Of a stretch of 64,000 nt of DNA, positions 7,098-64,000 are shown one piece after another. The DNA lies in NCBI RefSeq assembly GCF_030028105.1, contig NC_092374.1, positions 8,918,998 through 8,982,997 of the forward strand. The letters run 5' to 3'. Numbering within the stretch: position 1 is the stretch's first letter; each line of letters starts with the position of its first letter. The translations under genes and the position numbers were made by a program. Below the pieces are notes generated by a model that did not search any database, was not told where the DNA came from, and saw only the letters and a program-made list of their open reading frames with translations. Source of the stretch: Mobula birostris (taxonomy: Eukaryota).

Positions 7098-10000
7098 ACC
7101 ATATATAACCATATAACAATTACAGCACGGAAACAGGCCATCTCAGCCCTTCTAGTCCGTGCTGAACTCTTACTCTCACCTAGTCCCACCGACCTGCACT
7201 CAGCCCATAACCCTTCATTCCTATCCTGTCCATATAGCTATCCAATTTAACTTTAAATGACAACATCAAACCTGCCTCCTCATCTTACCCCTAAACTTTT
7301 GCCCTTTAACTCTCAACTCATGTCCTCTTGTTTGAATCTCCCCCACTCTCAATGGAAAAAGCCTATCCACGTCAACTTTATCTATCCCCCTCATAATTTT
7401 AAATACCTCTATCAGGTCCCCACTCAACATTCTACTTTCCAAAGAATAGAGACCCAACTTGTTTTTTCTCTGTAACTTAGGTGATGAAACCCAGGTAGCA
7501 TTCTAGTAAATCTTCTCTGTACTCTCTTGATTTGGTTGACATCTTTCCTATAATTTGCTGACCAAAACTGTACACAATACTCCAAGTTTGGCCTTACCAA
7601 TGCCTTGTACAATTTCAACATTAAATCCCAACTCCTATACTCAATGCTCTGATTTATAAAGGCCAGCATACCAAAAACTTTCTTCACCACCCTATCCGTA
7701 TGAGATTCCACCTTCAGGGAACTATGCACCATTATTCCTAGATCCCGCTGTTCTACTGCATTCTTCAATGCCCTACCATTTACTATGTATGTCCTATTTT
7801 GATTAGTCCTACTAAAATGTAGCACCTCACATTTATCAGCATTAAACTCCATCTGCCATCTTTCAGCCCACTCTTCTAACTGGCCTAAATCTCTCTGCAA
7901 GCTTTGAAAACCTACTTCATTATCCACAACTCCACCTATCTTAGTATCATCTGCATACTTACTACTCCAATTTACCACCCCATCATCCAGATCATTAATG
8001 TATATGACAAACAACATTGGACCCAGTACAGATCCCTGAGGCACACCACTAGTCACCGGCCTCCAATCTGACAAACAGTTTCCACCACTACTCTCTGGCG
8101 TCTCCCATCCAGCCACTGCTGAATCCATTTTACTACTTCAATATTAATACCTAACGATTGAACCTTCCTAACTAACCTTCCGTGTGGAACCTTGTCAAAG
8201 GCCTTACTGAAGTCCATATAGACAACATCCACCGCTTTACCCTCATCAACTTTCCTAGTAACCTCTTCAAAAAATTCAATAAGATTTGTCAAACATGACC
8301 TTCCATGCACAAATCCATGTTGACTGTTCCCAATCAGACCCTGTCTATCCAGATAATGATATATACCATCTCTAAGAATACCTTCCATCAATTTACCCAC
8401 CACTGACATCAAACTCACAGGCCGATAATTGCTCGGTTTACTCTTAGAACCCTTTTAAAACAATGGAACAACACGAGCAATATGCCAATCCTCCGGCACC
8501 ATCCCCGTTTCTAATGACATTCGAAATATTTCTGTCAGAGCCCCTGCTATTTCCACACTAACTTCCCTCAAGGTCCTAGGGAATATCCTGTCAGGACCCA
8601 GAGACTTATCCACTTTTATATTCCTTAAAAGCTCCAGTACTTCCTGTTCTTTAATCATCATAGTTTCCATAACTTCTCTACCTGTTTCCTTTATCTTACA
8701 CAATTCAATATCCTTCTCCTTAGTGAATACCGAAGAAAAGAAATTGTTCAGAATCTTCCCTTTCTCTTTTGACTTCACACATAGCCATCCACTCTGATTC
8801 TCTACGGGACCAATTTTATCCCTCGCTGTCCCTTTGCTATTAATATAACTGTAGAAACCCTTGGGATTTATTTTCACCTTACTTGCCAAAGCAACCTCAT
8901 ATCTTCTTTTAGCTTTTCTGATTCCTTTCTTAAGATTCATTTTACATTCTTTATATTCCTCGAGCACCTCATTTACTCCATGCTGCCTGTATTTATTGTA
9001 GATATCTCTCTTTTTCCGAACGAAGTTTCCAATATCCCTTGAAAATCATGGCTCTCTCAAACTTTTAATCTTTCCTTTCAACCGAACAGGAACATAATGA
9101 TTCTGTACCCTCAAAATTTCACCTTTAAATGACCTCCATTTCTCTGTTACATTCTTCCCATAAAACAAATTGTCCCAATCCACTCCTTCTGAATCCTTTT
9201 GTATCTCAAAGTTAGCCTTTCTCCAATCAAAAATCTCAACCCTGGGTCCAGATCTATCCTTCTCCATAATTATACTGAAACTGATAGCATTGTGATCACT
9301 GGACCCGAAGTGCTCCCCAACACATACCTCCGTGACCTGACCTATCTCATTCCCTAACAGGAAAACCAACACTTCCCCTTCTCTATTTGGTACCTCAATG
9401 TATTGCAGCAAAAAACTATCCTGCACACATTTTACAAACTCCAAACCATCCAGCCCTTTTACAGTATGGGCTTCCCTGTCTATGTGTGAAAAATTAACAT
9501 CTCCCACAATCACGACCTTATGCTTACTACAGATATCTGCTATCTCCTTACAAATTTCCTCCTTCAATTCTCGGTCCCCATTTGGGGTCTATAATATACC
9601 CCTATAAGTGTTACTGCACCTTTCTCATTCCTCAGTTCCACCCAAGTAGCCTCTCTAGATGAGCCCTCTAATGTATCCTGCCAGAGCACCGCCGTAATAT
9701 TTTCTCTGACAAGCAATGCAACACCTCCTCCTCTTGTCCCTCCGATTCTATCACACCTGAAGCACTTAAATCCAGGAATATTTAGTTGCCAATCACACCC
9801 CTCCTGTAACCATGTTTCACTAATTGCTACCACATCATACTTCCAGGTATCAATCCATGCATTAAGCTCTCCATCTTTCTTATAATGCTCCTGGCATTAA
9901 AATAAATGCATTTAAGAAATTTTCCACCTCTTACTCTCTGTTTAACACTGACAGTGCAAACAACTTTACTATTTTCTTTTTCTTCCTTCTCCCCTACACC

Positions 10001-12024: not shown

Positions 12025-12160
12025 TCCAGTCCTGATGAAGGGTCTCGGCCTGAGACATCGGCTATACTCTTTCCCATAGATGCTGCCTGGCCTGCTGAGT
12101 TCCTCCGGCATTTTGTGTGTGTTGCTCAGATTTTCAGCATCTGCAGATTTTCTCTTGTTT
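12025..12160 (+). mobile_element. Short Penelope-terminus element with a mutated hammerhead motif
   Basis: CAGTC-CTGATGA-A-GGGTCTCGGCCT-GAGACATC followed by the shared tail gatgctgcctggcctgctgagttcctcc...gcatctgcaga. Confidence 0.7.
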
Positions 12161-14787: not shown

Positions 14788-15874
14788 TTCTGAGTCATTG
14801 CAGGTCCTCGGAATGCCTCAGTGCAGCTGGGAGTTTGTGGGAGTTTCCTATCCAAGTCGCGTCTTGTGATTAGCAACCCGCAGAACACGCTGAATAAAGC
14901 ATGGGCTGTCAGTCACAGGAACTCATTCTAAGTTCCCCATGACTCAACCTCTTGCCATATTTAGTCCATGACTCTCAGAAAGATACAGCAGAGAAACGGC
15001 TTTGCCTGCCTGCTCTGAACCTGAGTGCCCGCATTAGGGCCATGGCCCTATACTCCACCCCTACCCATTGCACTTTCTCCGTAGCTTCCACACTTTATTA
15101 AAGCCATACAGTCTAGAGCAGGGAAACAGACCATTCGGCCCAAAACACCTGTGCTCAACATTTCAGAAACAGCCTCTTCCCCTCCCCATCAGATTTCTGA
15201 ATGGACCATGAACCCACGTGCACTACCTCACTAGTTTTCCCTGTTTTTTGCTCTTTTCAGCACTGCTTACTTAATTAAATTTTTGATATATTTTATTCAG
15301 ATTTGTAGTTTCTGTTTATTTTTACGTATTGCAATGTAAAACAATAAATTTCACGACATCTACCAGTGATATTAAACCTGATTATGCCTTGTCCATCCGG
15401 AATGCGTTGCCCTGAGAGCTCGTCCCATCTGCCTGCATTCGGCCCAGATCTCTCTAAACCTCCCCTACCCATGTACTTATCTGGATAGCTTTTAAATTTT
15501 GCATGGGTGTCCACCTCAACCACTATTTCTGACAACTCATTCCAAATACACACCAGTTTTTCTGTAAAGAGCTGCCCTCATGTTCCTTTTAAAGTTCTTG
15601 CCTCTGATCTTAATCCTATTCTGTCTTGTTTTTGGTAGCCCCTCACTCTGTCTATGCCCCTCATGACCTTGTGTACCTCTATCAGGTCACCCCCTCGATC
15701 TTCTACGTTCCAGGAAATAAAGTCCTAGTCTATGGAACATCTTGTAAGTCAGACCTTCAATTCCAGGTGCCATCCTGAGAAATCTTTTATGCACTCTTTC
15801 TAGTTTAATACTATCTTTCCTGTAGAAAGTAAAAAGGATCTAGTGCTTTTCTGGCATATATGACAAGTAACTCG

Positions 15875-16005
15875 TCTCGGGCTTCCAGCCCGGTACAAGT
15901 AGCGACCTTTCGATGGCAAACCCTGCCATCTTCATCCCTGATGGCAGAGTTTGTCATCGAAACTTCGGTTATAATTGATACCTGTACCCAGCTGGAAGGC
16001 TGAGA
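15875..16005. repeat. Imperfect palindrome containing two degenerate hammerhead-like cores
   Basis: Left arm 15875-15930 is the near reverse complement of right arm 15940-16005. Each arm reads GATGGCA-loop-TG(T/C)CATC-GAAA. Confidence 0.75.
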
Positions 16006-16059
16006 AGTTTATTCGCCTGTACAAGGTACTCCAAGACAGGTCTCACCGATGTTTTATAT

Positions 16060-18706: not shown

Positions 18707-19105
18707 GAGACCCAGCCTCCGTGTCTGTGGAGGTCCCGAAGAGAGTGAAAGGTACTGTCGGACATTCGGTGGTTTTGCCCTGCACTTTAAAGTCTCCCTA
18801 CACTGAGTACACGACCATTGAGATTGTCATCATCTGGAAGATAAAGGTGTTTTACGAAGGGCCGGTATTGTTCAACGTGACTAACAGGAGCAAGGGCAGC
18901 AAGGAGTTTGAGAATGAAGTTCACACAAATATCAAAGGCCGGTACAAACTGGCTGGGGACCCGAGAAAGGGAAATGCCGCCCTGGAGCTGCAGAATGCTA
19001 CGCTGGATGACAGCGATCAATACTTCTGCCGTGTGGAAATTAAACGGCAGGGCCTGGGCACCTTCAAGGCTGAGTCCAACCCTGGGATCACACTGGAAAT
19101 ATTGG
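18707..19105 (+). CDS. SIGLEC15-like: Siglec-15-like gene exon 2: Ig V-set sialic-acid-binding domain
   Basis: Acceptor ctctttatccctacag|, donor G|GTAAAT, phase 1-1, 399 nt. Protein has VVLPC (B-strand Cys), IIW, GRYKLAGDPRKGNAALEL and DDSDQYFCRVE with the essential Arg, closely paralleling the Siglec-15 V domain. Confidence 0.92.
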
Positions 19106-19144
19106 GTAAATATCATAGATGTTGGATATATTCATTCTCATTCA

Positions 19145-26488: not shown

Positions 26489-29447
26489 CAGTGGCGTCTC
26501 TGAGGTATGGCAGGTATGGCACGTGCCCTGGGCACCACTTGAAGTGGGGGGGGGGCGCCACTGAGCAGTTTGTATTAAAGTCAGACAAGCCATCCTCGGA
26601 TAGTGAAAAAAGAGCTTTCTTCAGATGTATGATCTGTCTTTGATTATCATGGGTGAGAAGCACTAGGATGGCCTTATTTCAGAGCATTGTGTAAGAAGAC
26701 TGTGAAACATTTCTTCATGAAGAAGAAGGAAAGCGGAGCTGAAGGATGGAAGAGACGAAAGTTGGAGGCGGAGGAAGCCAAGAAGTCGAGCAAATTCTTC
26801 ATGCCTTTCTTTGAAAAGCCTGGAACAAGTAGTTCAACACATTCCACGGAGTCGCCTGCACCTGCTACAAGTTTGTTAGAATCCGAAGGTGGATCAAGTA
26901 CAAATGGGTCACAAGCTGAGGAGGAAGTCGAGTCAGATAAATCCGAGTATGACGAGATTAAGAGTGAAGCTGCCACAGAGAACATGGACATGACAGGAGG
27001 GGAAGACGATGGTGGTGGTGATGTTGAGTTTATTGACGAGATTTTACCTGATGAGATTGAACCTGGGCAACATTGAACCTAGTGAACTGGATGGTGTCAA
27101 AGAGCCTCGAACTGTCTTACCAGAGGTGACTGAACAGCATGACATTGGACTTCTGAAGTTCCACAAGGATACTGGAAAAGCAATTCTGCCTGACGCATGA
27201 GAACAGAAATAATAAAGCTGGGTTCAAAGTATTTTCAGAACAGTGAGGGGCCTTTCCTACCAACAAGTAACCGTTCAATGAACAAAACTTGGTTCAAGAG
27301 GAAATTGGGAAATGGTCGTGGTGAGGAAGTGATTCGCTCGTGGCTGGTCTATTCCCCTTCTAAGAAGTCTGCATTTTGTGTCTGTTGTCTTCTCTATTCC
27401 CAGTCAGACCATCCATCCTCATTGGAGAAGGAAAGTGGATTCAACCTGTGGAAAGCACCTGAAAGGATTAATGTTCATGAAAATGCTAAGAATCATCGGG
27501 AATGCTTCACACAGTGGAAAGAAATTTAGCTGGAAACAGAGGAGTTATTGATGCGGAATTTCAGTCACAGATTGAGAAGGAAAAGCAGAAGTGGTGTGAT
27601 ACCTTGACAAGAATCCTTGGCTGCATAAAATTCCTTGCGACTCAGAACCTGGCTTTGCGACGACACAAGGAGTTACTTCAGCTAGACGGTGACTCCAATG
27701 TGGGAAATTTCTTTGGCTTACTGAAACTATAGGCCATCTTTGACCCTGTCATAAAGGAACACCTCACTCATTTGGAAAGTCATCCTGGACCCATGTCTTA
27801 TCTTTCACCGGGTGTCCAGAATGAATTCATCCACATGATGGCATCCACCGTTCTCCAGAGTTAACTGAGAAGCATTCGTAAAGCCAAGTACTATGGTCTC
27901 ATGTTCGACTCAACTCCTGATCAGGCACACCGTGGGCAGATGTCAGAAGTAGTGAGGTATGTGGAAGTTGATTTTGAGAGGAAAACTGTCCGTGTTTGAG
28001 TCCTTCCTTGGTTTTATCCAGATAAGCCAGAAGGATGCTGAGAGCCTGGTTGAAGACTTCTTGAAACAGCTAGAGAAGGATGAAATGGAGCTACAAGATT
28101 GTCGGTCACAGAGCTATGACAACGCTGGCAGTGTTTGTGAGTTGCGACAATCACTCACTCAATTTGGTGGGTGTACATGCAGCCAAGCAGGATACAATGA
28201 TGGTCACGTTTTTTGGAACCATCAAAGCTCTATAAGTGTTTTTCTCTCGTTCAACACAGCGCTGGGAAAAACTCAAAAACGCCGTGCCTGTGGGTGTTAA
28301 GTCCGAGTCCGAAACCAGGTGGAGTGCAAGGACAGAAGCAGTGAAGCCCGTCAACAAGTACCTTGAGATACTTCAAGTTCTCCAGGACATGATAGACAAT
28401 GAAAATGAGTCCAGTGAATCAAGAAGTGATGCAAGGCAGCTGTACAACCGCATGTTGAGTTACGATTTTCTGATTTTGCTAGGATTTTGGAACAAAGTGC
28501 TCATTCGCATTGACCATATTCAAAACAGGTTGCAGGATCCTAGCATGAACTTCCACGATGCTGCCCCGGATTTGAAAGCACTCCAAGATAATTTTTATGA
28601 TGAAAGAGAAGTGTTGGTCAGTGAGTCACTCGAAGAAGGAGTCGGTCTCTGTCAAGAATGGAATATTGAAGTTGAAAGATGTCAGAGATGAAAGAAACGA
28701 ATGGCTGATGAGAACTCGAGAGACGCTGGGTTAACAGCTAAGGAGGAAATGGAAAGAGTCATGAAGGGAACACTCGACCATCTTCACAGAGAAATGGACG
28801 AAAGGTTCGCTCATTTGCACAACACTGACACCAAGTTTGGGTTCCTTCTCGATGTTGAGGGACTGTGTTACGGTGCCGACGGTAACGACCTAAAGAAGAA
28901 GTGTGAAAATTTGGGTGAATTGTACAGCTCTGATGTTGATGGACAGCAGCTATATGAAGAAATTTTGGATTGCAGAATGTTGCTATCAAGGCCGGTCAAC
29001 ATGAAAATATCAAGACCTGAAGAGTTTCATGAATTTATTGTTCAGTGTGGAGATGAGAGCATCTTCCCCAATCTTCGCATTGCTATTCAGATAATGCTAA
29101 CCATCACAGTTACCATCGCCAGCTGTGAGAGATCATTCAGCAAGTTAAAACTAATACTTTCATATTTGAGAGCCTCCATGGGTCAAAGCAGACTCTGTGA
29201 TCTTGCTCTGATGAAAAAACTGACTTTGATCACATCATAGACCAATTTGCATCAGTGAAAGCAAGGAAGGTGCAGTTCTAATTTTCACGTAGTGCCATAA
29301 TTTGTTAACTAAATGATTAACGAGCTTGACTTGTATTTTTGAACTGATATTATGGTAAATTTATTTAGAAGATGGGTGTCAGATGTTTGGACAGTGGCGG
29401 AATTTTAGTGCTTGCCATAGGCACTATTTTCCGTCGATACACCCCTG
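26489..29447 (+). mobile_element. hAT DNA transposon, full-span with frameshifted ZMYM1-like transposase
   Basis: Perfect 8-bp TSD TTATAGAT (26481-26488 and 29448-29455). Imperfect TIRs CAGTGGCGTCTC / CAGGGGTGTATC. ORF pieces 26687-29240 carry WLVYS..AFCVCC (TTF), FLATQNLALR (DUF4371-like), ETRWS and CERSFSKLKLI (hATC). Flanks are a continuous CR1 fragment. Confidence 0.92.
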
Positions 29448-29798
29448 TTATAGATATCTTTCCTGTAGGTAGGTGACTAAAACCGCACACAATACTACAA
29501 ATTAGGCCTCAGTGTAATGATGCAGCAAGACTCATGGCAGTGAACATGCATATTGTGAACCAATTCAATGGGGATATAATTACTCAACTACCTTTACCCT
29601 ACATCAGGATAATCCACGTTTCCCCTAAACCATGGTAGATCACAAAGTGAATAGTGGGGCTCTGAGGAGTGTGGTAGAACAAGGGGACCTGGGAATACAG
29701 GTCCATAATTCATTGAAAGTGACAAATTTCATGGGTAGATAGGGTTGTAAAGAAAGCTTTTGGTACATTGGCCATAAATCAATGCATTGAGTACAGGA

Positions 29799-29928
29799 AC
29801 ACGAGGAATTCTGCAGATGCTGGAAATTCAAGCAACACACATCAAAGTTGCTGGTGAACGCAGCAGGCCAGGCAGCATCTCTAGGAAGAGGTACAGTCGA
29901 CGTTTCGGGCCGAGACCCTTCGTCAGGA
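29799..29928 (-). mobile_element. 130-bp non-autonomous Penelope-terminus element with a 14-bp TSD
   Basis: TSD CATTGAGTACAGGA at 29785-29798 and 29929-29942. Contains the hammerhead core plus the shared tail. Confidence 0.9.
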
Positions 29929-29929
29929 C
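29894..29929 (-). ncRNA. Minimal type I hammerhead ribozyme motif (intact catalytic core)
   Basis: Minus strand reads GUC-CUGACGA-A-GGGU(CUCG)GCCC-GAA-ACGU-C-GACUG. It has the CUGANGA and GAAA cores, a 4-bp stem II, a palindromic ACGU stem III and a GUC cleavage triplet (cleavage after 29899). Stem I is only 3 bp in this copy. Confidence 0.7.
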
Positions 29930-30739
29930 ATTGAGTACAGGAGTTGGGATATTATGTTGAAGTTGTACAAGACGTTGTTGAGGCCTAATTTGAAGTATTG
30001 TGTGCAGTTTTGTTTACCTACCTGCAGAAAAGATGTACGTAAGGTTGAAAGAGTACAGAGAAAATTTACAAGGATGTTGCTGGGTCTGGAGGACCTAAGT
30101 GGACCTGAGTTGTAAGTAAAGATTGAATAGGTTAGGATTTTATTTCTTGCAATGTAGAAGATTGAGAGGAGATTTGATAGAGGTACACAGATTTATGAGG
30201 GCTAGGGTAGAAGCAAACAGACCTTTTCTTCTGAGCTTGGGTGGTACTACAGCCTGAGTTCATGGGAAGGTGAAGGGTGAGAAGTTTCAGGGAAACAAGA
30301 GGGGAAATTTCTTCACTCAGGTGATGAGAGTGTGGAATGAGCTGCCAGCACAAGTGGTGCATGCGAGCTCGATTTCAGTGTCTAAGAGAAGGTTAGATAG
30401 GTACATGGATAGTATGGTTATGGAGGGTGATAGTCCCAGTCCAGATCAATGTTTTCAGCATGGACTAAGTGGGCCAAATGGCCTGTTTCTGTGCTGAACT
30501 CTGACACTTATCACTATTTTTAAGTAAATTCAGTTTAAAGAGTAACAATATTTTAGCACATCAAAAATAGATGCAATCCAATTTTTATACCTCTGTATTA
30601 GATTCATAAAATTAACTGGTCAGGATTCAAGACTGCTTTAGGTCACAGATGCTGCCTGGTCTGCTGAGTTCCTCTGGCATTTTGTGTGTGTGTTGCTCAG
30701 ATTTCGAGGATCTGCAGATTTCCTCGTTTCTGTTTTATG

Positions 30740-34871: not shown

Positions 34872-34967
34872 TGTTAGGGTGCCCTCTACTGCCCATCTGT
34901 AGAATGACGCGAGTATGGATATGCACAGTCTAGCTCTCCACAGCCTCCCCAGAAAGCAGAGGCATGT

Positions 34968-35155
34968 AACACACATCAAAGTTGCTGGTGAACGCAGCAG
35001 GCCAGGCAGCATCTCTAGGAAGAGGTACAGTCGATGTTTCAGGTTGAGACCCTTCACCAGCAACTTTGATGTGTGTTGCTTGAATTTCCAGCATCTGCAC
35101 TAGCAACTTGATATGTGTTGCTTGAATTTCCAGCATCTGCAGAATTCCTGTTGTG
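34968..35155. mobile_element. Penelope-terminus insertion with inverted 5' segment and duplicated tail, 13-bp TSD
   Basis: TSD AGCAGAGGCATGT at 34955-34967 and 35156-35168. Perfect 25-bp inverted repeat at 34968-34992 and 35053-35077. Confidence 0.85.
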
Positions 35156-35270
35156 AGCAGAGGCATGTGCCTTGCACGTTAGTACAACGGTTCTACAGGA
35201 ATTGTTAAGTAAACAATGATTTGAATATTTTATGTAGTTAAATATTAACCCTGTGTTCTTCCTTTCGCAG

Positions 35271-35654
35271 GTGCCCCTATCATCCTGCATGTCTCAGTTA
35301 ACGTAATCAACACCACCCATTCTACTCTAGAATGCCTGGCAGAGGGGCAACCCTCCCCAAACATCATTTGGATCGACCCCCACAACAAGAGGCTTCCAGT
35401 GAATGGCAGCGACACTCCCGTCACACCAGGACCGGGAAAGTATCAGACCCTGGGAGAGCTACGTCACCCAAAGCTGGGGGGAAATTACACCTGCCTGGTG
35501 GTAAACGACCAAGGAAACAACACGGAGTCCGTCCACCTGCCCAAAACCGCGCAGAGCCAACACCGGCTCATTTACATCATCGGAATTCTGGTCGGAAGCA
35601 TCTTCGCGATAATTCTGATTGTTATTGTCTTAGTGATCCTGAGGAGGAGGAGCG
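35271..35654 (+). CDS. SIGLEC15-like: Siglec-15-like gene exon 3: Ig C2-set domain plus transmembrane helix
   Basis: Acceptor tgttcttcctttcgcag|, donor G|GTGAGT, phase 1-1, 384 nt. Translates APIILHVSV..LECLAEGQPSPNIIW..GNYTCLVVNDQG, then TM LIYIIGILVGSIFAIILIVIVLVIL and stop-transfer RRRS. Confidence 0.92.
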
Positions 35655-36938
35655 GTGAGTTACTTTTTGTAGGGGGCAAGGGATCTGGGAGCTGACAACC
35701 TCACCAGAGGGTCAGGTCACACTGGATTTATTTCAAAGATACGTTTTAGATGGTGAATATGGTTTGGAAGGAAGAGTTGGTTCAAGTTGAAGTTTATTGT
35801 CATTCAACAATGCACATGTAGACAGCCAAACAAATCAAAGTTCCTCAGGGACCAAGTTACAAAGCACAGTCCATACAGTCACACAGAGCATATAGAATAA
35901 TATTAAGAGATAATTTAATAATTCATAATTGATATAAAGTGCATCTACAAAAGAACGTTAAGTATACAACTTTGATAAATAAGGTGTGCTGGGTGGTAAC
36001 AGGACATTCAGGAGTCTCACAACCTGTTACCCAGCTTAACGGTGCTTGTTGTTACACTACGATACCCTCTGCCTGATGGTAGATCAAAGAGATTGTTAAA
36101 CAGAAGGGAGGGCTCCCTGACGATGCTGAGGGTTCTGTGAATGCACACTTCTGGATGGGGAGGGCAGGGAAGAGAGGCTCCGGGTTACAGGAGTGATTGG
36201 AGTCAAGGGGAAGGAGTGAAGAGGAAGAAATATAAGGGAGGGCCTGGGGTGGCCGGTGAAGAAGGGTGGGGGGGGGGGGAAGTGTGGAGGAACGATGGAC
36301 GAAGTGAAGACCAGGAGGAAGGGACCTAGGTGTGGGAAATGGGAGGGATTCCTAGGTGGAATCTGATAAATTGGAAAGGACTTGGGAATGGCTGGGAATA
36401 GGCAAGTGGGGTTGGGGAATTTGTGTTGGATGAATGGGAGTGTGGTGATAGTGCATGAATTGACCATGAGACTATTAAGATATAGGAGCAGAATTAGATC
36501 ATTTGGCCCATCGAGTCTGCTTTGTCATTTCAGCATGGCTGATCCAATTCCCTCTCGGTCCCAATCTCCTACCTTCTCCCCATATCCCTACATGCCCTGA
36601 CTAATCAAGAATCTATCAACCTCTGTCTTAAATGTACCCGTTGACTTGGCCTCCACAGCCGTCTGTGACAATGAACTCCACAGATTCACTAGCCTCTGAC
36701 CAAAGAAATTGGAGGGAGGAAATCGAGTCGCATGGTCATTGGGAAATAGGAGACCCAGAGAGGAAAGAGGAGGAGAGAGGATGGAGAGTGGTGGGTAGAG
36801 TAGAGGAGCAAGGGGAAAGCACACCAGAAACATAAGAGCCAGTGCCGGCAACTTGGCCCCAATATTTAATCTGACTGTAGCTGAGCTAAGCTGTCCTTTT
36901 CTGTGCCATTTCTCCATACTCCTCTAGTTCTCTATCAG

Positions 36939-54044: not shown

Positions 54045-57000
54045 AGCTAAGGTTTTGAGAGGCTGGTCAAGGACTACATCTGCAGCTTGCTTCCACCCAC
54101 ACTGGACCCTCTTTAATTCGCCTACTGACACAACCGATTGGCAGATAACGCAAAAGATGCAGCTCTACACACTGTCCTTGCACACCTGGAGAGGAGGGAT
54201 GCTTATGTGTGAATGCTGTTCTTGGGTTACAGTTCAGCATTCAACACCATAATTCCCTCCAGGCTCGACAAGAAGCTCAGAGACCTTGGCCTTCACCCTT
54301 TCGCAGGATTCAAAGAAGGAAGTCTGAGAGTTGGAGCAGGAGTGCGGAGGAAGCCATTTTTGAATTTTTCGTTTTTTTCCCATCGGCGTTCAGAGAGGCG
54401 GGACTGCGCAGGCGTGTGACGTCGGGCAGTGAAGCGCGGAAGCTTTAAAAGGAACAGAGCCTCATACAGCGGGCAGCGGAATTTGCGGGCGGCGGAGTGC
54501 CGGGAGTAGAGTGAAGGCTTAAGGGCTTCGGCTCACCAGGCTTAGGCGGAAACGGGCAAGGCGAGGAAGGTTTGATATTCATTTTTTGTTGTTATTTGTG
54601 GAGAGGGGCAGTATGAGTGTGAGGGCAGTTTGCTGTTCTCGGTGTCAGATGTGGGAGGCCCTGGAGTCTCCAAGCCTCCCGGACGTCCACATCTGCGTCA
54701 GGTGCGCTGAAATGCAGCTCCTAAGGGACCGCGTTAGGGAACTGGAGCTGCAGCTCGATGACCTTCGTCTGGTCAGGGAGAGTGAGGAGTTGATAGGGGT
54801 TACAAGCAGGTGGTCACACCGGGGCCACGGGAGGCAGACCAGTGGGTCACGGTTAGGAGGGGGAAGGGGAAGAGTCAGGTAATAGAGAGTACCCCGGTGG
54901 CTGTGCCTCTTGACAATAGGTACTCCTGTTTGAGTACTTTTGGGGGGGGGGACAGTTTACCTGGGGGAAGAGATAGTGGCCGTGCCTCCGGCACAGAGTC
55001 TGGCCCTGTAGCTCAGAAGGGTAGAGAAAAGAAGAGGAGAGCAGTTGTAATAGGGAACTCGATAGTAAGGGGGTCAGATAGGCTATTCTGTGGACGCAGT
55101 CCAGAGACCCGGATGGTAGTTTGCCTCCCTGGTGCCAGGGTCCGGGATATTTCTGATCGTGTCCAAGATATCCTGAAGTGGGAGGGTGAGGAGCCAGAGG
55201 TCGTGGTACATATAGGTACCAATGACATAGGTAGGACAACGTAAGAGGCCCTGAAAGGAGAATATAGGGAGCTAGGAAGAGAGTTGAGAAAAAGGACCGC
55301 AAAGGTAGTAATCTCGGGATTACTGCCTGTGCCACGTGACAGTGAGAGTAGGAATGCGATGAGGTGGAGGATAAATGCGTGGCGGAAGGATTGGAGCAGG
55401 GGGCAGGGATTCAAGTTTTTGGATCATTGGGACCTCTTTTGGCGCAGGCGTGACCTGTACAAAAAGGACGGGTTACACTTGAATCCTAGGGGGACCAATA
55501 TCCTGGCAGGGAGATTAGCGAGGGCTACTGAGGTGACTTTAAACTAAAATGGTTGGGGGGTGGGAATCAAATTAAAGAGACTAGGAGAGAGGAGGTTAGT
55601 TCACAACAGGTGGATGGGAACCAGTGCAGAGAGACAGAGGGGTGTAAAATGAGGGTAGAAGCAAAAAGTAGTAAGGTGAAAAGTAAAAGTGGCAGGCCGA
55701 CAAATCCAGGGCAAGCATTAAAAAGGACCACTTTTCAACATAATTGTATAAGGGCTAAGAGAGTTGTAAAAGCGTGCCTGAAGGCTTTGTGTGTCAATGC
55801 AAGGAGCATTCATAACAAGGTGGGTGAATTAAAAGTGCAGATTGTTATTAATGATTATGATATAGTTGGGATCACAGAGACATGGCTCCAGGGTGACCAA
55901 GGATGGGAGCTCAACATTCAGGGATATTCAAAATTCAGGAGGGATAGACATGAAAGAAAAGGAGGTGGGGTGGCGTTGCTGGTTAGAGAGGAGATTAACG
56001 CAATAGAAAGGAAGGACATAAGCCTGGAAGATGTGGAATTGATATGGGTAGAGCTGCATAACACTAAGGGGCAGAAAACGCTGGTGGGAGTTGTGTACAG
56101 GCCACCTAACAGTAGTAGTGAGGTTGGGGATGGTATTAAACAGGAAATTAGAAATGTGTGCAATAAAGGAACAGCAGTTATAATGGGTGACTTCAACCTA
56201 CATGTAGATTGGGTGAACCAAATTGGTAAGGGTGCTGAGGAAGAGGATTTCTTGGAATGTATGCGGGATGGTTTTTTGAACCAACATGTCGAGGAACCAA
56301 CCAGAGAGCAGGCTATTCTAGACTGGGTATTGAGCAATGAGGAAGGGTTAATTAGCAATCTTGTTGTGAGAGGCCCCTTGGGTAAGAGTGACCATAATAT
56401 GGTGGAATTCTTCATTAAGATGGAGAGTGACATAGTTAATTCAGAAACAAAGGTTCTGAACTTAAAGAAGGGTAACTTTGAAGGTATGAAACGTGAATTA
56501 GCTAAGATAGACTGGCAAATGACACTTAAAGGATTGACGGTGGATATGCAATGGCAAGCATTTAAAGGTTGCATGGATGAACTACAACAATTGTTCATCC
56601 CAGTTTGGCAAAAGAATAAATCAAGGAAGGTAGTGCACCCATGGCTGACAAGGGAAATTAGGGATAGTACCAACTCCAAAGAAGCAGCATATAAATTAGC
56701 CAGAAAAAGTGGCTCACCTGAGGACTGGGAGAAATTCAGAGTTCAGCAGAGGAGGACAAAGGGCTTAATTAGGAAGGGGAGAAAAGATTTTGAGAGAAAA
56801 CTGGCAGGGAACATAAAAACTGACTGTAAAAGCTTTTATAGATATGTGAAAAGAAAAAGATTGGTTAAGACAAATGTAGGTCTCCTACAGACAGAAACAG
56901 GTGAATTGATTATGGGGAGCAAGGACATGGGAGACCAATTGAATAATTACTTTGGTTCTGTCTTCACTAGGGAGGACATAAATAATCTTCCGGAAATAGT

Positions 57001-59670
57001 AGGGGACAGAGGGTCCAGTGAGATGGAGGAACTGAGGGAAATACATGTTAGTAGGGAAGTGGTGTTAGGTAAATTGAAGGGATTAAAGGCAGATAAATCC
57101 CCAGGGCCAGATGGTCTGCATCCCAGAGTGCTTAAGGAAGTAGCCCAAGAAATAGTGGATGCATTAGTGATAATGTTTCAAAACTCTTTAGATTCTGGAC
57201 TAGTTCCTGAGGATTGGAGGGTGGCTAATGTAACTCCACCTTTTAAAAAAGGAGGGAAAGAGAAACCAAGGAATTATAGACCGGTTAGCCTAACATCGGT
57301 GGTGGGGAAACTGCTAGAGTCAGTTATCAAAGATGTGATAACAGCACATTTGGAAAGCGGTGAAATGTCTGACAAATCTCATAGAATTTTTTGAGGATGT
57401 AACTAGTAGAGTGGATAGGGGAGAACCAGTGGATGTGGTATATTTGGATTTTCAAAAGGCTTTTGACAAGGTCCCACACAGGAGATTAGTGCGCAAACTT
57501 AAAGCACACGGTATTGGGGGTAAGGTATTGATGTGGATAGAGAATTGGTTGGCAGACAGGAAGCAAAGAGTGGGAATAAACGGGACCTTTTCAGAATGGC
57601 AGGCAGTGACTAGTGGGGTACCGCAAGGCTCAGTGCTGGGACCCCAGTTGTTTACAATATATATTAATGACTTGGATGAGGGAATTAAATACAACATCTC
57701 CAAGTTTGCGGATGACACGAAGCTGGGCAGCAGTGTTGGCTGTGAAGAGGATGCTAAGAGGATGCAGGGTGACTTGGATAGGTTAGGTGAGTGGGCAAAT
57801 TCATGGCAGATGCAATTTAATGTGGATAAATGTGAAGTTATCCACTTTGGTGGCTAAAACAGGAAAACAGATTATTATCTGAATGGTGGCCGATTAGGAA
57901 AAGGGGAGGTGCAACGAGACCTGGGTGTCATTATACACCAGTCATTGAAAGTAGGCATGCAGGTACAGCAGGCAGTGAAAAAGGCGAATGGTATGCTGGC
58001 ATTTATAGCGAGAGGATTCGAGTACAGGAGCAGGGAGGTACTACTGCAGTTGTACAAGGCCTTGGTGAGACCACACCTGGAGTATTGTGTGCAGTTTTGG
58101 TCCCCTAATCTGAGGAAAGACATCCTTGCCATAGAGGGAGTACAAAGAAGGTTCACCAGATTTATTCCTGGGATGGCAGGACTTTCATATGAAGAAAGAC
58201 TGGATGAACTGGGCTTGTACTCGTTGGAATTTAGAAGATTGAGGGGGGATCTGATTAAAATGTATAAAATCCTGAAGGGATTGGACAGGCTAGATGCAGG
58301 AAGATTGTTCCCGATGTTGGGCGGGGGGGTGTCCAGAACGAGGGGTCACGGTTTGAGGATAAAGGGGAAGCCTTTTAGGACCGAGATGAGGAAAAACTTC
58401 TTCACACAGAGAGTGGTGAATCTGTGGAATTCTCTGCCACAGGAAACAGTTGAGGCCAGTTCATTGGCTATATTTAAGAGGGAGTTAGATATGGCCCTTG
58501 TGGCTGAAGGGATCAGGGGGTATGGAGGGAAGGCTGGTTCAGGGTTCTGAGTTGGATGATCAGCCATGATCATACTGAATGGCGGTGCAGGCTCGAATGG
58601 CCGAATGGCCTACTCCTGCACCTATTTTCTATGTTTCTATGTTTATGCAGCTGGATCCTGGACTTCCTATCAGATCACTGGCAGGTGGTAAAAATGGGCT
58701 CCCTCACCTCTGCCCCTCTGACTCTCGACACAGAAGCCCCCCAGGGATGTGTCCTAAGCCCCTCCCCAACCTTTACTCTTTGTACACCAATGACTGTGTC
58801 GCCACCCACAGCTCCAGTTAATTTTGCTAACAATACTACATTGATTGGCCTAAATTCAAATAATAATGAGGCAGCCTACAAAGAAAAAGTTATCACCCTG
58901 ACACAGTGGTGTCAAGAAGACAACCTCTCCCTCAATGTTGCAAAAACAAAGGAGCTGGTTGTGGACTACAGGAGGAACGGAGACAAGCTCAACCCTATTG
59001 ACATCAATGGATCTGGGGTTGAGAGGGTGAACAGCTTCAAGTTCCTCGGTAAACATACGACCGAGGATCTTACGACGTCTATACATACCAGCTGTGTTGC
59101 AAAAAAAACAACAGCTCCTCTTTCACTTCAGATGGTTGAAGAAGTTTGGTATGGGCCCCCAAATCATAGGACTTTCTGCTGGGGCACAATTGAGAGCATC
59201 CTGACTGGCTGTATCACTGCCTGGTATGGGAACTGTACTTCCCTCAATCACAGAACTCTGCAGAGAGTGGTGCGGACAGCCCAGTGCATCTGTAGATGTG
59301 AACTTCCCAATATTCAGGACAGGTGTATAAAAAGGGCCCGAAGGATCATTGGGGACCCGAGTCACCCCAACCAACAAACTCTTCCAGCTGCTTCCATCTG
59401 GAAATCGGTACACCAGCATAAAAGCCAGGACCAACAGGCTCAGGGACAGCTTCTTCCACCAGGCCATCAGACTGATTAATTCACACTGACACAATTGTAT
59501 TTCTAAGCTTTTTTGATTGTTCTGTTGTATATCTTACTCTACATACTATTTATTACAAATTACTATAATTTGCACATTGCACATTCAGACGGAGCCGTAA
59601 CATAAAGGTTTTTACTCCTCCTGTATACGAAGGATGTAAGAAATAAAGTCAATTCAATTCAATTCGATTC
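54045..59670 (+). mobile_element. Rex1/Babar-like LINE (54045-54300 and 58647-59670) interrupted by a full-length CR1
   Basis: RT motifs SAFNTIIP before the insertion; SWILDFL, APQGCVLSP and WCQEDNLSLNVAKTKEL after it. (caatt)n tail at about 59650-59670. Confidence 0.85.
54301..58646 (+). mobile_element. Near full-length CR1 LINE (5' UTR, ORF1 zinc finger plus SGNH esterase, ORF2 APE-RT, 3' UTR with octamer tail)
   Basis: ORF1 runs from ATG 54613 to about 55547 with frameshifts and a stop. ORF2 pieces 55553-57394, 57360-57857 and 57909-58550. (ttctatgt)n tail at about 58627-58644. Confidence 0.93.
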
Positions 59671-59899
59671 ATTCACTATCTATTGAATGTGACACAACAC
59701 AACTCTCTGATAATTCAGCCCTCTTTCAACAGGGCAGTGACCCAGGGTGGGCACATAAATCACCCATAGTGGAATCGTGGAGCAGAGTCGATGGGACAAA
59801 TGATCTAATTTTGCTCCTGTGTCTTATGGTCTTATAGTATGACTCCTAAAGTGTCTGTGGCCTCAGCTCAGTGTTAACACCACACTTCTGTCTTCACAG

Positions 59900-60275
59900 C
59901 CGCTGACAATAATAGATGGATCATGGAGATTTCCGGCAAGGTGATAAGGAGACAAGAGAATTCCTTGGTTCTGTTCTGCTCTTTCACTGCCCCTTTCCAT
60001 GAATACAAGGGGAACATCAGCATCATCTGGAAGAATGGGAATTGACACTTTTCAATTACATAAATTATCCATCAGGATGTAGGTTGACAAATCAGATCGT
60101 GGAGAACAAAGATGATCGCTACCAACCTCTGGGGGACCCATGGGAGAACAATGCTTCAAATAATCCCATCTAATAACTAAATAAAGAAGACAGAAGGAAA
60201 GACGTAATATTGTCATGTCGATTTCACAAAAGGCAGGAAAATATGAAATTGCTCATGGAAACATCAAAGTAACAG
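59900..60275 (+). pseudogene. Disabled Siglec-15-like V-set exon (paralog)
   Basis: Acceptor cttctgtcttcacag| and donor CAG|GTGAGG. Fragments translate RWIMEIS..LVLFCSFTAPFHEYKGNISIIWK, LFNY, DRYQPLGDPWENNAS, YCHVDF and GKYEIAHGNIKVT, with in-frame stops and frameshifts. Confidence 0.8.
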
Positions 60276-60647
60276 GTGAGGAGTAATTGCATCTGAAATC
60301 TGCTGAAGAGATTACTGACTACAGTTTGTCCTCCCTCACTCCTGAGGTCTGGGTGTCACAAGCAGGGCTGGATGTTGTTGTTGCTCATTCCTGTGTCTGC
60401 TCGGGTACATCAGAGGACAATAGCATGTTGGAATGCACTCACATCTACTAAAGAGAATTTCAGAAAGAAATTGGGAGGGAATAAAAATAGGATTTGAAAT
60501 GCTGGCAGTCAGTATAATGGACATCCCACAACTATTGACTGGTTCATGGGGAGTAAGAGAGTGGCTAAGAAATGAGAAGATTCCTTCAGGGACGTAAAGG
60601 GAAACCCCGATGAGTTGGGTTCCAGGTAAATGAATACTTCTTATTGG

Positions 60648-62214
60648 TGTATCGTTCTGTTATATTGGCTCCTATATGTCCAGGGGAAATCCTGCCCAGC
60701 ACCTGCCTCAACACTCCCCACAGTGTCGGTCGCCGCCCAAATCAATCCTAAACATCAGTCATCAGCCAGCACACCCAGTAAATTTTAACAAATAAACTTT
60801 ATAGATATTACTAGTTCTATGACATTAATATAAATTTGATACAGAGAGGAAAGTAATGAAAAAAAAAGCGCCAACACTTATCCAAGTCCAAGTTCTTCGC
60901 GCGCTACCGTTGGAGCTCAATCGATTCCTGACGACCACCCGGATCCTGTCGACTCACGGCTCAGGATCACCCGGAGTGATCGACTGGAGCCTTTTGCGCG
61001 TCCGCCGTCCTCCTCGTCTCTCCTCCGACTCCCCGTCTCTCCCCCGACTCCCCATCTCTCCTCCGACTCCCCGTCTCTCCTCTGACTCCCCGTCAAAAAC
61101 CCCCGCACGTCCACCGTCCTCCCCGTCTCTCCTCCGACTCCCCGTCTCTCCTCCGACTCCCCGTCTCTCCCCTGACTCCCCGTCTCTCCACCGACTCCCC
61201 ATCTCTCCTCCGACCCCCCGTCTCTCCACCGTCCTCCCCGTCTCTCCTCCGTCCTCCATCCTCCCCGTCTCTCCTCCGACTCCCCATCTCTCCACCGTCC
61301 TCCCCGTCTCTCCTCCGTCCTCCATCCTCCCCGTCTCTCCACTGTCTTCCCCGTCTCTCCGCCGTCCTCCCCGTCTCTCCGCCGTCCTCCCCGTCTCTCC
61401 TCCGTCCTCCATCCTCCCCGTCTCTCCGCCGTCCTCCCCGTCTCTCCTCCGTCCTCCCCGTCTCTCCTCCGACTCCTCGTCTCTCCTCCGACTCCCCGTC
61501 TCTCCACTGTCCTCCCCATCTCTCCTCCGACTCCCCGTCTCTCCTCCGACTCCCCGTCTCTCCACCGTCCTCCCCGTCTCTCCTCCGTCCTCCCCATCTC
61601 TCCTCCGTCCTCCCCGTCTCTCCCCCGACTCCCCGTCTCTCCTCCATCCTCCCCGTCTCTCCCCCGACTCCCCGTCTCTCCCCCGTCCTCCCCGTCTTTC
61701 CGCCGTCCTCCCCGTCCCTCTTCCGACTCCCCGTCCCTCCTCCGACTCCCCGTCCCTCCTTCGACTCGTCTCTCCTCCATCCTCCGTCCTCCCCATCTCT
61801 CCCCCGACTCCCCGTCTCTCCTCCATCCTCCGTCCTCCCCATCTCTCCTCCGACTCCCTGTCTCTCCTCCGTCCTCCCCGTCTCTCCTCCGACTCCCCGT
61901 CTCTCCTCCGACTCCCCATCTCCCCGTCGTCCTCCCCGTCTCTCCTCTGACTCCCCGTCTCCCCACCGTCCTCCTCGTCTCTCCTCCGATTCCCCGTCTC
62001 TCCTCTGACTCCTTCCCCAAAAACCCCGTTCCCAGTCATATGATACAGCATTGTATCGGAAAACAAAATGACACATGACCACCCATTGGCTGATAGCACC
62101 CTGCTATCTCTAATAACCCAAGCAAATGTCTAGTTAGAGACTGTCTCAGCATTCCCCAGTATAACATAACAAAATAAACCATTTTAAATTTAACAAAAAG
62201 AAAGACCCCGTACA
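60648..62214 (-). mobile_element. 3' LTR of a Gypsy retrotransposon, expanded by an internal minisatellite
   Basis: On the minus strand it starts TGTA immediately after the PPT GGGGGGAGAG (62215-62224) and ends TACA at 60648. The left flank is a CR1 fragment. Confidence 0.75.
61005..62012. repeat. Pyrimidine/purine-asymmetric minisatellite (about 19-bp ccgtctctcctccgactcc and ccgtcctcc variants)
   Basis: About 1 kb of scrambled short units. It produces four long spurious ORFs. Confidence 0.95.
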
Positions 62215-62235
62215 CTCTCCCCCCACCAATAAAAG

Positions 62236-64000
62236 TCATGCCCTCATGACGTTAACAGAGTTCACCAGTGCTCCTTGTAAAACACAAAACCCAACCCAGG
62301 TGCACAAAGCAGTGACATAACCTCCCAGGGCAGTAGAGATCACACCCTGCTCTCCCGGCGCTGTATAAGTCAGTCTCTCCGGGGGATGTCTACGCCTCTG
62401 AGGCCTCTGGACTTCCTCTGCTGACTCTCCCTGTTCAGACACCCCAGGTGACCTCCCGGGCCTATCTGTCGGACCCTCCCCCTCACCGGGACCCCTCAGC
62501 CCCTGTGAGCCCTCTGCCTCAGGTTCTGGTTCCACCCTCTCCTCCCCCAATCCCGGCTGTAATACAAGCGGCTCTGCAACACCCTCCCTCGGTTCCCCTA
62601 ACTCAGTGATGGAAGGGCCAGGAGTCTCTTCTCCCGGCACTGGGGAATCAACGAATGGAAACAGGTACCACACGTCTGAATCATCATCTTCCGATGACGT
62701 ATCCCTTCTCGAGGTGGGGATCGGCCCCGTCTCCTTCACAGCGGGCTCTTCCCTCGCCCCGCGCCCTCGCAGAGTCCTCGTACTAGGCGTAAACTCCCAT
62801 TCGAGCTCTGAGTCTACCTTCACCTCTCGACGCAGAGGCAACAGGTGGTTCCGATGGAGTACCTTGACAGGCCCCTCCCCATCCTCAGGTCTCACCCGGT
62901 AAACAGGGAGATTCGGCATCTGACTCTCTACCACATAGGGGGTGGCTGCCCAACAGTCCGCCAACTTGTGCTTACCAGGTAGTCCTAAATTCCGGATAAG
63001 GACTCGGTCTCCCGTCAATAGCTGGACGAACTTTACTTTCTGATCATACCTCTTCTTATTCCGCTGGTTCTGCTTGGTGGCTGCCGCCTCAGCCAACTCG
63101 TACACCCTTTTCAACTCTCTCCTCGTATCGGACACGTACATCAGACATGGCTTCGAAGGTATTTCACCCGCTCCAGTCCCAAAACACAGATCAGTAGGCA
63201 ACCTCGCTTCCCGTCCGAACATCAGATAGTAGGGCGAGTACCCCGTAGCATCATTGCGAGTACAATTGTAACAATGAACCAAATGGGCAATGTGCTGACT
63301 CCACTTACTCTTCTGTCCAATCTCCAAGGTGTCGAGCATGTCCAGCAGGGTCCGGTTAAACCTCTCGGGCTGAGGATCACCCTGCGGGTGATAGGGGGTG
63401 GCTCTGGATTTCTCAACCCCAAGCATATCCAGTAATTCATGGATAAGCCTGCTCTCGAAGTCCCGTCCCTGATCACTGTGGATCCGCCGGGGAAGGCCAT
63501 AATGAACAAAGTACTTCTCCCACAACACCTTCGCCACTGTAGTCGCTTTCTGATCCTTAGTAGGAAAAGCCTGCGCATATCTAGTGTAGTGATTCGTGAG
63601 GACCAAAACATTCGCGGTATTGCTGGTGTCCGGCTCAATAGACAGGAAATCCATACATACCAGGTCCATGGGTCCTGCACTCTGCAAGTGGGACAGAGGA
63701 GCCACCTGCGGAGGCAAGGTCTTCCTCCTGATGCAACGACTACAGGTCTTACAGTATTCTTCCACCTCCCCCCTCATCTGGGGCCAGTAAACCCGGTCCT
63801 TGACTAATCCATAGGTCTTCTCTACCCCTAAGTGCCCAGAATCATCATGTAGAGCCTGGAGCACAGTCTTCTGATACTTCTCAGGCATGACCAGCTGCCA
63901 GTGCCGGGGGTGGTCCGGAGGCGACGTGACCTGGTACAGGACGTGGTTCTTCAGCTTCAACCGAGGCCACTCCTTCAGTAGTAGGGGAACGGAGGCATGC
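62236..64000 (-). CDS. Gypsy/Ty3 pol C-terminus: integrase (HHCC zinc finger, DDE core, C-terminal domain); ORF runs off the window
   Basis: Uninterrupted ORF with LHDDSGHLG..YCKTCSRC, CMDFL, HSDQGRDFES and PERFNRTL. The frame stays open to 64000. Confidence 0.93.
   Translation of the reverse strand, partial: HASVPLLLKEWPRLKLKNHVLYQVTSPPDHPRHWQLVMPEKYQKTVLQALHDDSGHLGVEKTYGLVKDRVYWPQMRGEVEEYCKTCSRCIRRKTLPPQVAPLSHLQSAGPMDLVCMDFLSIEPDTSNTANVLVLTNHYTRYAQAFPTKDQKATTVAKVLWEKYFVHYGLPRRIHSDQGRDFESRLIHELLDMLGVEKSRATPYHPQGDPQPERFNRTLLDMLDTLEIGQKSKWSQHIAHLVHCYNCTRNDATGYSPYYLMFGREARLPTDLCFGTGAGEIPSKPCLMYVSDTRRELKRVYELAEAAATKQNQRNKKRYDQKVKFVQLLTGDRVLIRNLGLPGKHKLADCWAATPYVVESQMPNLPVYRVRPEDGEGPVKVLHRNHLLPLRREVKVDSELEWEFTPSTRTLRGRGAREEPAVKETGPIPTSRRDTSSEDDDSDVWYLFPFVDSPVPGEETPGPSITELGEPREGVAEPLVLQPGLGEERVEPEPEAEGSQGLRGPGEGEGPTDRPGRSPGVSEQGESAEEVQRPQRRRHPPERLTYTAPGEQGVISTALGGYVTALCTWVGFCVLQGALVNSVNVMRA

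Follow-up and report, generated by a model that had tools for sequence, protein, structure and literature searches.

The 130-nt insertion at 29799–29928 of the window (the whole 64-kb stretch of DNA analysed here) is very probably a recent solo copy, a few bases short at its 5′ end, of a non-autonomous family of ~140 nt. The family comprises a minimal hammerhead ribozyme (min-HHR) of the kind found in Penelope-like elements (PLEs) and a ~100-nt tail; on this reading, the copy was mobilised by PLE machinery and is inert at its locus. As a young copy of a PLE-type min-HHR short retroelement, the insert is ordinary; elements of this known kind are hyper-abundant. No paper in the searchable literature contained its exact sequence, and the family-level points set out below are all in line with the literature of 2014–2026, with nothing unexpected among them. 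At its locus, the insert appears to be intronic, antisense to a Siglec-15-like gene, neutral and of very little consequence. The insert, its flanking repeat and its host are as follows.

29608–30531, plus strand: host fragment of a CR1-type LINE, ORF2 C-terminal region; flank translations match the reverse transcriptase (RT)-containing ORF of a paralog at 7424–8128
29785–29798, no strand: left target-site duplication (TSD), exact 14-mer CATTGAGTACAGGA
29799–29928, minus strand: 130-nt insert, a hammerhead-plus-tail short retroelement copy without ~5–9 nt of the family 5′ end
29799–29895, minus strand: element tail, including the GATGCTGCCTGGCCTGCTG block (29879–29861) and a subfamily-specific segment at ~29835–29860
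29929–29942, no strand: right TSD, exact 14-mer CATTGAGTACAGGA; it begins at 29929 with a minus-strand G that is helix I position 2.3

The direct repeat is 14 bp long and extends no further on either side. A LINE paralog on the minus strand near 7633 has the 14-mer once, with one mismatch, and both of its flanks match those of the insert locus, left to left and right to right. Because the 14-mer is single in this paralog, the repeat is a true TSD and is not native to the host LINE. The translations agree: the left flank of the insert ends ...INQCIEYR and the right flank restarts IEYRSWDIMLKLYK..., and the paralog's RT-containing ORF reads ...INQSIEYRSWDLMLKLYK..., with IEYR once there versus on both sides of the insert at the insert locus. 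Public Logan contigs of four related organisms, A–D, from DNA runs and from runs guessed to be RNA, were also aligned to the locus. In organism A, 73 contigs carried unbroken LINE sequence across the insertion site (loose end at 29930). A sequence-only reading of this DNA had proposed a retrotransposed insert within a 14-bp TSD while allowing that the 14-mers might be a native duplication in the CR1 repeat. The exact 14-mers and the paralogous empty site uphold the proposal; the reservation falls away on the single 14-mer and single IEYR of the ~7633 paralog and the 73 uninterrupted contigs. As to the host itself, a motif of the LEYCVQFW type is characteristic of the ORF2 C-terminus in CR1-clade LINEs, and the depth of the LINE repeat stops at a unique stretch, 30532–30615.

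Hundreds of contigs had loose ends at 29798 and 29929, which mark the termini of the family. Because contigs from other family copies match through 29929 (G), the G at this position is both a target base and a family base, that is, a 1-nt microhomology at the 5′ junction. The earlier reading placed the element boundary inside helix I, where a host G completes the remaining 3 bp; the boundary and the 3 bp stand, but the G at 29929 is the family's own base as well.

The minus strand of the insert reads UC, CUGACGA, A, GGGU-CUCG-GCCC, GAA, ACGU and C, followed by GACUGUACC (starting GACUG) and the ~100-nt tail. The hammerhead was annotated as follows.

29896–29929, minus strand: minimal type I hammerhead, from sequence and descriptor, with helices I and II present in the minimum-free-energy (MFE) fold
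29929–29927, minus strand: helix I, 5′ strand
29926–29920, minus strand: core C3–A9, CUGACGA
29919, minus strand: unpaired extra A after A9
29918–29907, minus strand: helix II with a CUCG loop, GGGU/GCCC, comprising G10.1–C11.1 (29918/29907), two G-C pairs and a U-G pair
29906–29904, minus strand: G12–A14, GAA
29903–29900, minus strand: palindromic ACGU (A15.1, C15.2, G16.2, U16.1) with zero loop nucleotides
29899, minus strand: C17; the predicted scissile bond lies between 29899 and 29898
29898–29896, minus strand: helix I, 3′ strand

A loose pattern, CTGANGA-N8–20-GAAAC, is expected ~0.8 times per window, and a full min-HHR descriptor was therefore written. It comprised helix I of at least 3 bp, CUGANGA, 0–1 extra nucleotides, helix II of 4 bp or more with G10.1–C11.1 as the closing pair, GAAA, a self-complementary dinucleotide, U and H (non-G). 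Across both strands of the 64 kb, the descriptor matched exactly once, at the insert's hammerhead, and it matched nothing in 300 composition-matched, first-order Markov simulations. The full core, GUC triplet and self-complementary ACGU that the sequence-only reading had reported were thus borne out by the minus-strand sequence and by this unique match. Chance might be invoked for the hammerhead resemblance and the flanking repeat alike, given how often the loose pattern alone is expected, but we consider this hardly credible: the simulations yielded no full match, the motif is inherited, its layout being shared by older family copies, and the 14-bp repeat is exact at a site that is single in paralogs. 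The Rfam hammerhead models (Hammerhead_1, RF00163, and relatives) gave no match at gathering across the window and none at E up to 10 on stretches of 351 nt and 66 nt. Since the motif has no helix III, this miss is to be expected; it reflects what the models can recognise and does not count against the hammerhead.

The min-HHRs of PLEs have no helix III loop, an unpaired nucleotide separating position 9 from 10.1, a G10.1–C11.1 pair, a palindromic 15.2–16.2 and a helix I of 4–5 bp (PMC4209133, Cervera & De la Peña 2014). The insert is likewise type I and carries the whole conserved core (C3 U4 G5 A6 N7 G8 A9 / G12 A13 A14 / A15.1–U16.1 / H17) at 29926–29899 of the minus strand. It also has a loopless helix III with a self-complementary 15.2–16.2 (palindromic CG, within the ACGU at 29903–29900), the unpaired A at 29919, the G 29918–C 29907 pair and a short helix I. 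Unlike in several published families, where helix II is 6–8 bp, that of the insert is 4 bp with a tetraloop. Its helix I consists of three pairs (C-G, U-A, G-C), below the 4–5 bp of PLE min-HHRs, and no PLE ORF or pLTR context occurs within the window. PLE min-HHRs are mainly dispersed single motifs from truncated PLEs (PMC4209133); the insert, too, is a dispersed single motif, and its hammerhead is expected to act as a dimer only. The extra A after A9 is present as the sequence-only reading had stated, but the CChMVd precedent that it had called upon is unneeded, since an unpaired nucleotide here is a stated hallmark of PLE min-HHRs (PMC4209133). The CChMVd (+) hammerhead (De la Peña & Flores 2001, as cited in PMC4209133) does have an unpaired nucleotide between A9 and helix II; nevertheless, this viroid ribozyme is of type III, its helices are full, and it resembles the insert in form only.

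The insert has numerous relatives nearby. The conserved GATGCTGCCTGGCCTGCTG block occurs in 7 copies in the window versus 0.02 expected, and the window contains at least 8 family copies in all; those returned by nhmmer and blastn with the insert as query are listed below. Two copies of the young subfamily and six older copies were counted in the 64 kb.

1466 (plus), 2056 (minus), 12030 (plus), 25323 (plus), 30624 (plus), 47246 (plus) and a complex copy at 34940–35154: family copies found with the insert as query (nhmmer/blastn)
34955–35168, minus strand: fold-back sibling of the young subfamily, with a forward copy (element nt 8–95) preceded by two tail pieces in inverted orientation

In the alignment, the older window copies had the same hammerhead layout, with cores broken mostly at CpG positions. 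The copies at 12030 and 25323 carry an extra shared 5′ stretch, UGUUCCAG, ahead of UCCUGAUGA, which completes a 5-bp helix I, CAGUC/GACUG. The insert copy ends before the UGUUCCAG stretch and retains three helix I pairs, two of the five being gone. The fold-back sibling is flanked by an exact 13-bp TSD, AGCAGAGGCATGT (plus strand), at 34955–34967 and 35156–35168, and its 3′ end is element nt 95, unlike that of the insert. PLE insertions are typically 5′-truncated and TSD-flanked, often with an inverted 5′-truncated copy ahead (PMC8557442, PMC3846280). This architecture was found here: the insert, flanked by a 14-bp TSD, is shorter than the family by 5–9 nt at the 5′ end, and the sibling has an inverted 5′ part, a 13-bp TSD and another 3′ end. 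The tail copy at 30624–30729 was considered as the 3′ end of the host CR1 itself and rejected; a unique stretch lies between, and genome-wide the piece is preceded by hammerhead-family sequence.

Elsewhere in the window, 15870–16010 forms a near-perfect 141-nt hairpin (−72.9 kcal/mol, z −9.1). Its arms contain decayed hammerhead-like cores of a different family, in which A9 is followed by an extra A and helix II (GAUGGCA/UGCCAUC) is 7 bp long; the min-HHR descriptor matches neither arm. The hairpin looks like an older fold-back PLE derivative.

The aligned contigs also bear on the abundance and age of the family. Summed contig depth over the element was 2–4.5 million in organism A and 8–17 million in organism B versus ~9 in a unique bin; contig depth is unreliable as copy number. 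For the family, the depth in DNA runs of these two related species suggests ~10^5–10^6 copies, a very rough order of magnitude that agrees with the two young-subfamily and six older copies counted in the window. Depth over the subfamily-specific segment (for example, at 29847) was 3.7 and 14.7 million in A and B versus ~2–3 thousand in C and D, ~1000-fold lower in the latter. Similarly, a diagnostic G at 29890 accounted for ~97% of the depth in A and B and for ~3–4% in C and D. This burst is specific to the lineage of two related species and shows recent activity of the mobilising machinery. Variation within the family was scored over 29828–29901 in A and B; contigs break at the element ends, leaving the outer ~29 nt on each side, and with them the whole catalytic core, outside the scored range. 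At all 14 scorable variable positions within that range (15 table rows), the insert copy has the majority letter. Its CpG observed/expected ratio is 0.77 versus 0.37 for the window. These two results support a young insert copy, as the sequence-only reading had held. With such numbers, the family represents a very large natural set of min-HHR variants in which selection on PLE hammerheads and cutting in vivo may be asked about.

Most contigs, drawn genome-wide from these organisms, exit the element into unrelated A/T-rich flanks. None spanned either junction of the insert, the contigs being short and the flanks repetitive. Among the joints listed for the contigs of the related organisms, none was a head-to-tail joint of 29799 to 29928. 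Contigs of organism C, and to a lesser extent those of B, return from ~29880 to ~29805 with 4–6 letters between, and the non-ribozyme part of the tail therefore also occurs as short tandem repeats of ~80 bp in relatives.

Among known systems, the Poseidon element PAc of Anolis carolinensis (Frangieh et al. 2024, PMC11167929) is one of the closest. Reverse transcription of PAc starts internally, ~111–118 nt past the start of the ORF, which adjoins the hammerhead; the enzyme nicks and extends both strands, favours AT-rich targets and uses uncleaved RNA, and the PAc hammerhead cuts only when helped by the protein (PMC11167929). The PAc traits match the insert family in that the 3′ end of the insert lies 100 nt past the predicted cut site, 3′ ends vary between copies, the flanks are A/T-rich and the 5′ end lies upstream of the cut. 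More specifically, PAc insertions end ~100–120 nt after the hammerhead, and extension from both nicks could explain the fold-back copies. Unlike PAc, the insert family has a unit of ~140 nt, no ORF running on from the hammerhead and a fairly fixed 5′ end. An ORF starting from an AUG inside CUGAUGA, as in Anolis PAc, was considered and rejected: the window consensus has an in-frame stop, TAG, and the insert copy has ACG in place of AUG. The family's behaviour is that of a short non-autonomous element rather than of a coding PLE cut short by truncation.

Non-LTR retrozymes of animals and satellite 2 of newts (Cervera & De la Peña 2020, PMC7229834; Li et al. 2026 preprint, 10.64898/2026.07.22.740005) resemble the insert in being non-autonomous, in carrying a type I hammerhead and in their relation to PLE pLTRs. 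Those of vertebrates cleave most effectively as dimers, and derivatives of the monomer are dispersed in genomes (PMC7229834; 10.64898/2026.07.22.740005). However, retrozymes are head-to-tail tandem repeats of 170–400 nt with a canonical helix III and circular RNAs, whereas the insert is a solo 130-nt copy with a TSD. The insert thus has neither the tandem 170–400-nt unit nor the canonical type I hammerhead by which retrozymes are defined.

On the preferred reading, an RNA of the family, uncut at the hammerhead, would have been reverse-transcribed where two nicks, staggered by 14 bp, had opened the target. At the empty site, the plus strand would have been nicked after 29798 and the minus strand between CAATG and CATTG, and the 5′ junction would have formed through the single shared G. 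A PLE reverse transcriptase/GIY-YIG endonuclease, supplied in trans, is the likeliest enzyme. The window contains no PLE ORF and its RT pieces are all LINE-like, with no GIY-YIG motif found there; PLE mobilisation, together with an autonomous partner and a PLE origin of the tail, is therefore our inference. The 14-mer target is not especially AT-rich, which counts against the PLE reading. Solo and fold-back insertions with TSDs of 13–14 bp provide handy material for the poorly understood mechanism of PLE integration.

The insert could instead be a conventional SINE-like element, moved by a CR1- or L2-type LINE that shares its 3′ tail, with the hammerhead-like head incidental or captured. Such an origin would suit an element that is short, dispersed, extremely abundant and TSD-flanked, in a window where LINE RTs are plentiful and a PLE ORF is absent. 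We nevertheless regard it as unlikely. No match to tRNA, 5S or 7SL occurs anywhere in the window, the element has no poly(A) or microsatellite tail, and it is unlike any LINE 3′ end in the window, the host CR1 fragment itself ending in unique sequence ahead of the next tail copy. Moreover, two features point to PLEs as their signatures: the min-HHR head, and a fold-back sibling that lies within one TSD.

Whether this copy would cut itself was addressed using predicted folds. In the MFE fold of the monomer, helices I and II are kept and the core GACG is paired with the CGUC of the cleavage site. The catalytic domain-swapped dimer was predicted at −13.9 kcal/mol versus −23.0 kcal/mol for two inactive monomers and −31.3 kcal/mol for the dimer MFE, nearest-neighbour energies that leave out the tertiary contacts of hammerheads and protein assistance. 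Even with the 5-bp helix I of the family restored, the double hammerhead reached only −21.9 versus −31.0 kcal/mol. The stability of the whole-element fold was ordinary (z −0.73). The lone insert copy is probably inert as a ribozyme, because helix I is 3 bp, loop 3 is lacking, no second copy lies in cis and the core is paired with the cleavage site in the favoured fold. With no loop 3, a second copy is needed to build helix III. The modelled hammerhead should cut neither itself efficiently nor, being antisense, the Siglec-like pre-mRNA. On the reading that best explains the data, it is a relic of the RNA biology of the family, with no function at the insert locus.

It is quite improbable, by our estimate, that the insert copy is instead a working ribozyme whose antisense intronic transcripts are cut between 29899 and 29898, alone or by ACGU pairing with transcripts of other copies. 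In its favour, every core nucleotide is intact, and words of the family are plentiful in runs guessed to be RNA from organisms A, B and H as well as in runs of unknown kind from organism I. In vitro, min-HHRs show weak cleavage as dimers (PMC4209133), and the PAc hammerhead cuts with protein help (PMC11167929). Depth ratios could also be read in this sense. The ratio of RNA-guessed to DNA depth is V-shaped across 29800–29932 in both species pairs, with its minimum in the 7-nt bin that holds the predicted cleavage site, 29898–29904. It runs from 0.118 through 0.069 to 0.108 in organism A and from 0.024 through 0.010 to 0.015 in organism B; the RNA-run labels are guesses, the runs consist of contigs, in which neither ends nor strand can be read, and contig depth is a poor measure. 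The dip could reflect cleavage of family transcripts, a bias from GC content or structure, or a differing age mix of the expressed copies. Against a working ribozyme stand the 3-bp helix I, the missing loop 3 and cis partner, and an active fold 9 kcal/mol worse than two inactive monomers. Furthermore, single min-HHRs show no detectable cleavage in vitro (PMC4209133), and no RNA-seq ends were found at the hammerhead site in Anolis (PMC11167929). Finally, the loose ends listed include no hot-spot at 29898/29899, although contig runs show neither ends nor strand.

A related possibility concerns the family as a whole: that its hammerhead is active in vivo, transcripts of different copies pairing through ACGU and cutting each other. 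This is conceivable because the genome may hold, very roughly, 10^5–10^6 near-identical copies, and we give it a similarly small chance. If it were true, sense-oriented intronic copies would be pre-mRNA liabilities, their orientation would be under selection, and the depth-ratio dip at the cleavage-site bin in two species would be its first trace.

One further form was seen near the cleavage site. It skips 29827–29897 and joins 29826, at the end of the tail, to 29898, the base just 3′ of the cut, in one RNA-guessed contig each of A (depth 96) and B (depth 826). The joint is in no listed DNA contig; single-copy DNA variants joining 29824 to 29898 and 29835 to 29899 exist. The 29826/29898 joint may represent deletion variants or template-switch products that end near the cleavage site.

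The position of the insert relative to the gene, which the sequence-only reading had given as antisense within a Siglec intron, was examined in the annotation of the window.

18712–19110, plus strand: V-set Ig exon of a Siglec-15-like gene (Pfam V-set, E 7.5e-12; best solved relative Siglec-15, 7zoz_A, E 3.2e-14)
35249–35692, plus strand: exon encoding a second Ig domain and a transmembrane (TM) segment

Provided that the two exons are parts of a single gene, the minus-strand insert is intronic and antisense in it, and the placement is confirmed on that condition. The fold-back sibling at 34955–35168 sits just upstream of the start of the Ig+TM exon at 35249. In the sense of the host gene (plus strand), the insert contains an acceptor-like CTGCAG/A and a donor-like GAG/GTACAG ~70 nt apart.

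Other mobile elements were annotated in the window, with a dense cluster of their ORFs at 55553–63960.

28701–29240: hAT dimerisation-domain fragment
55553–59479, plus strand: LINE with an AP-endonuclease domain and RT pieces
62236–63960, minus strand: LTR-type integrase ORF
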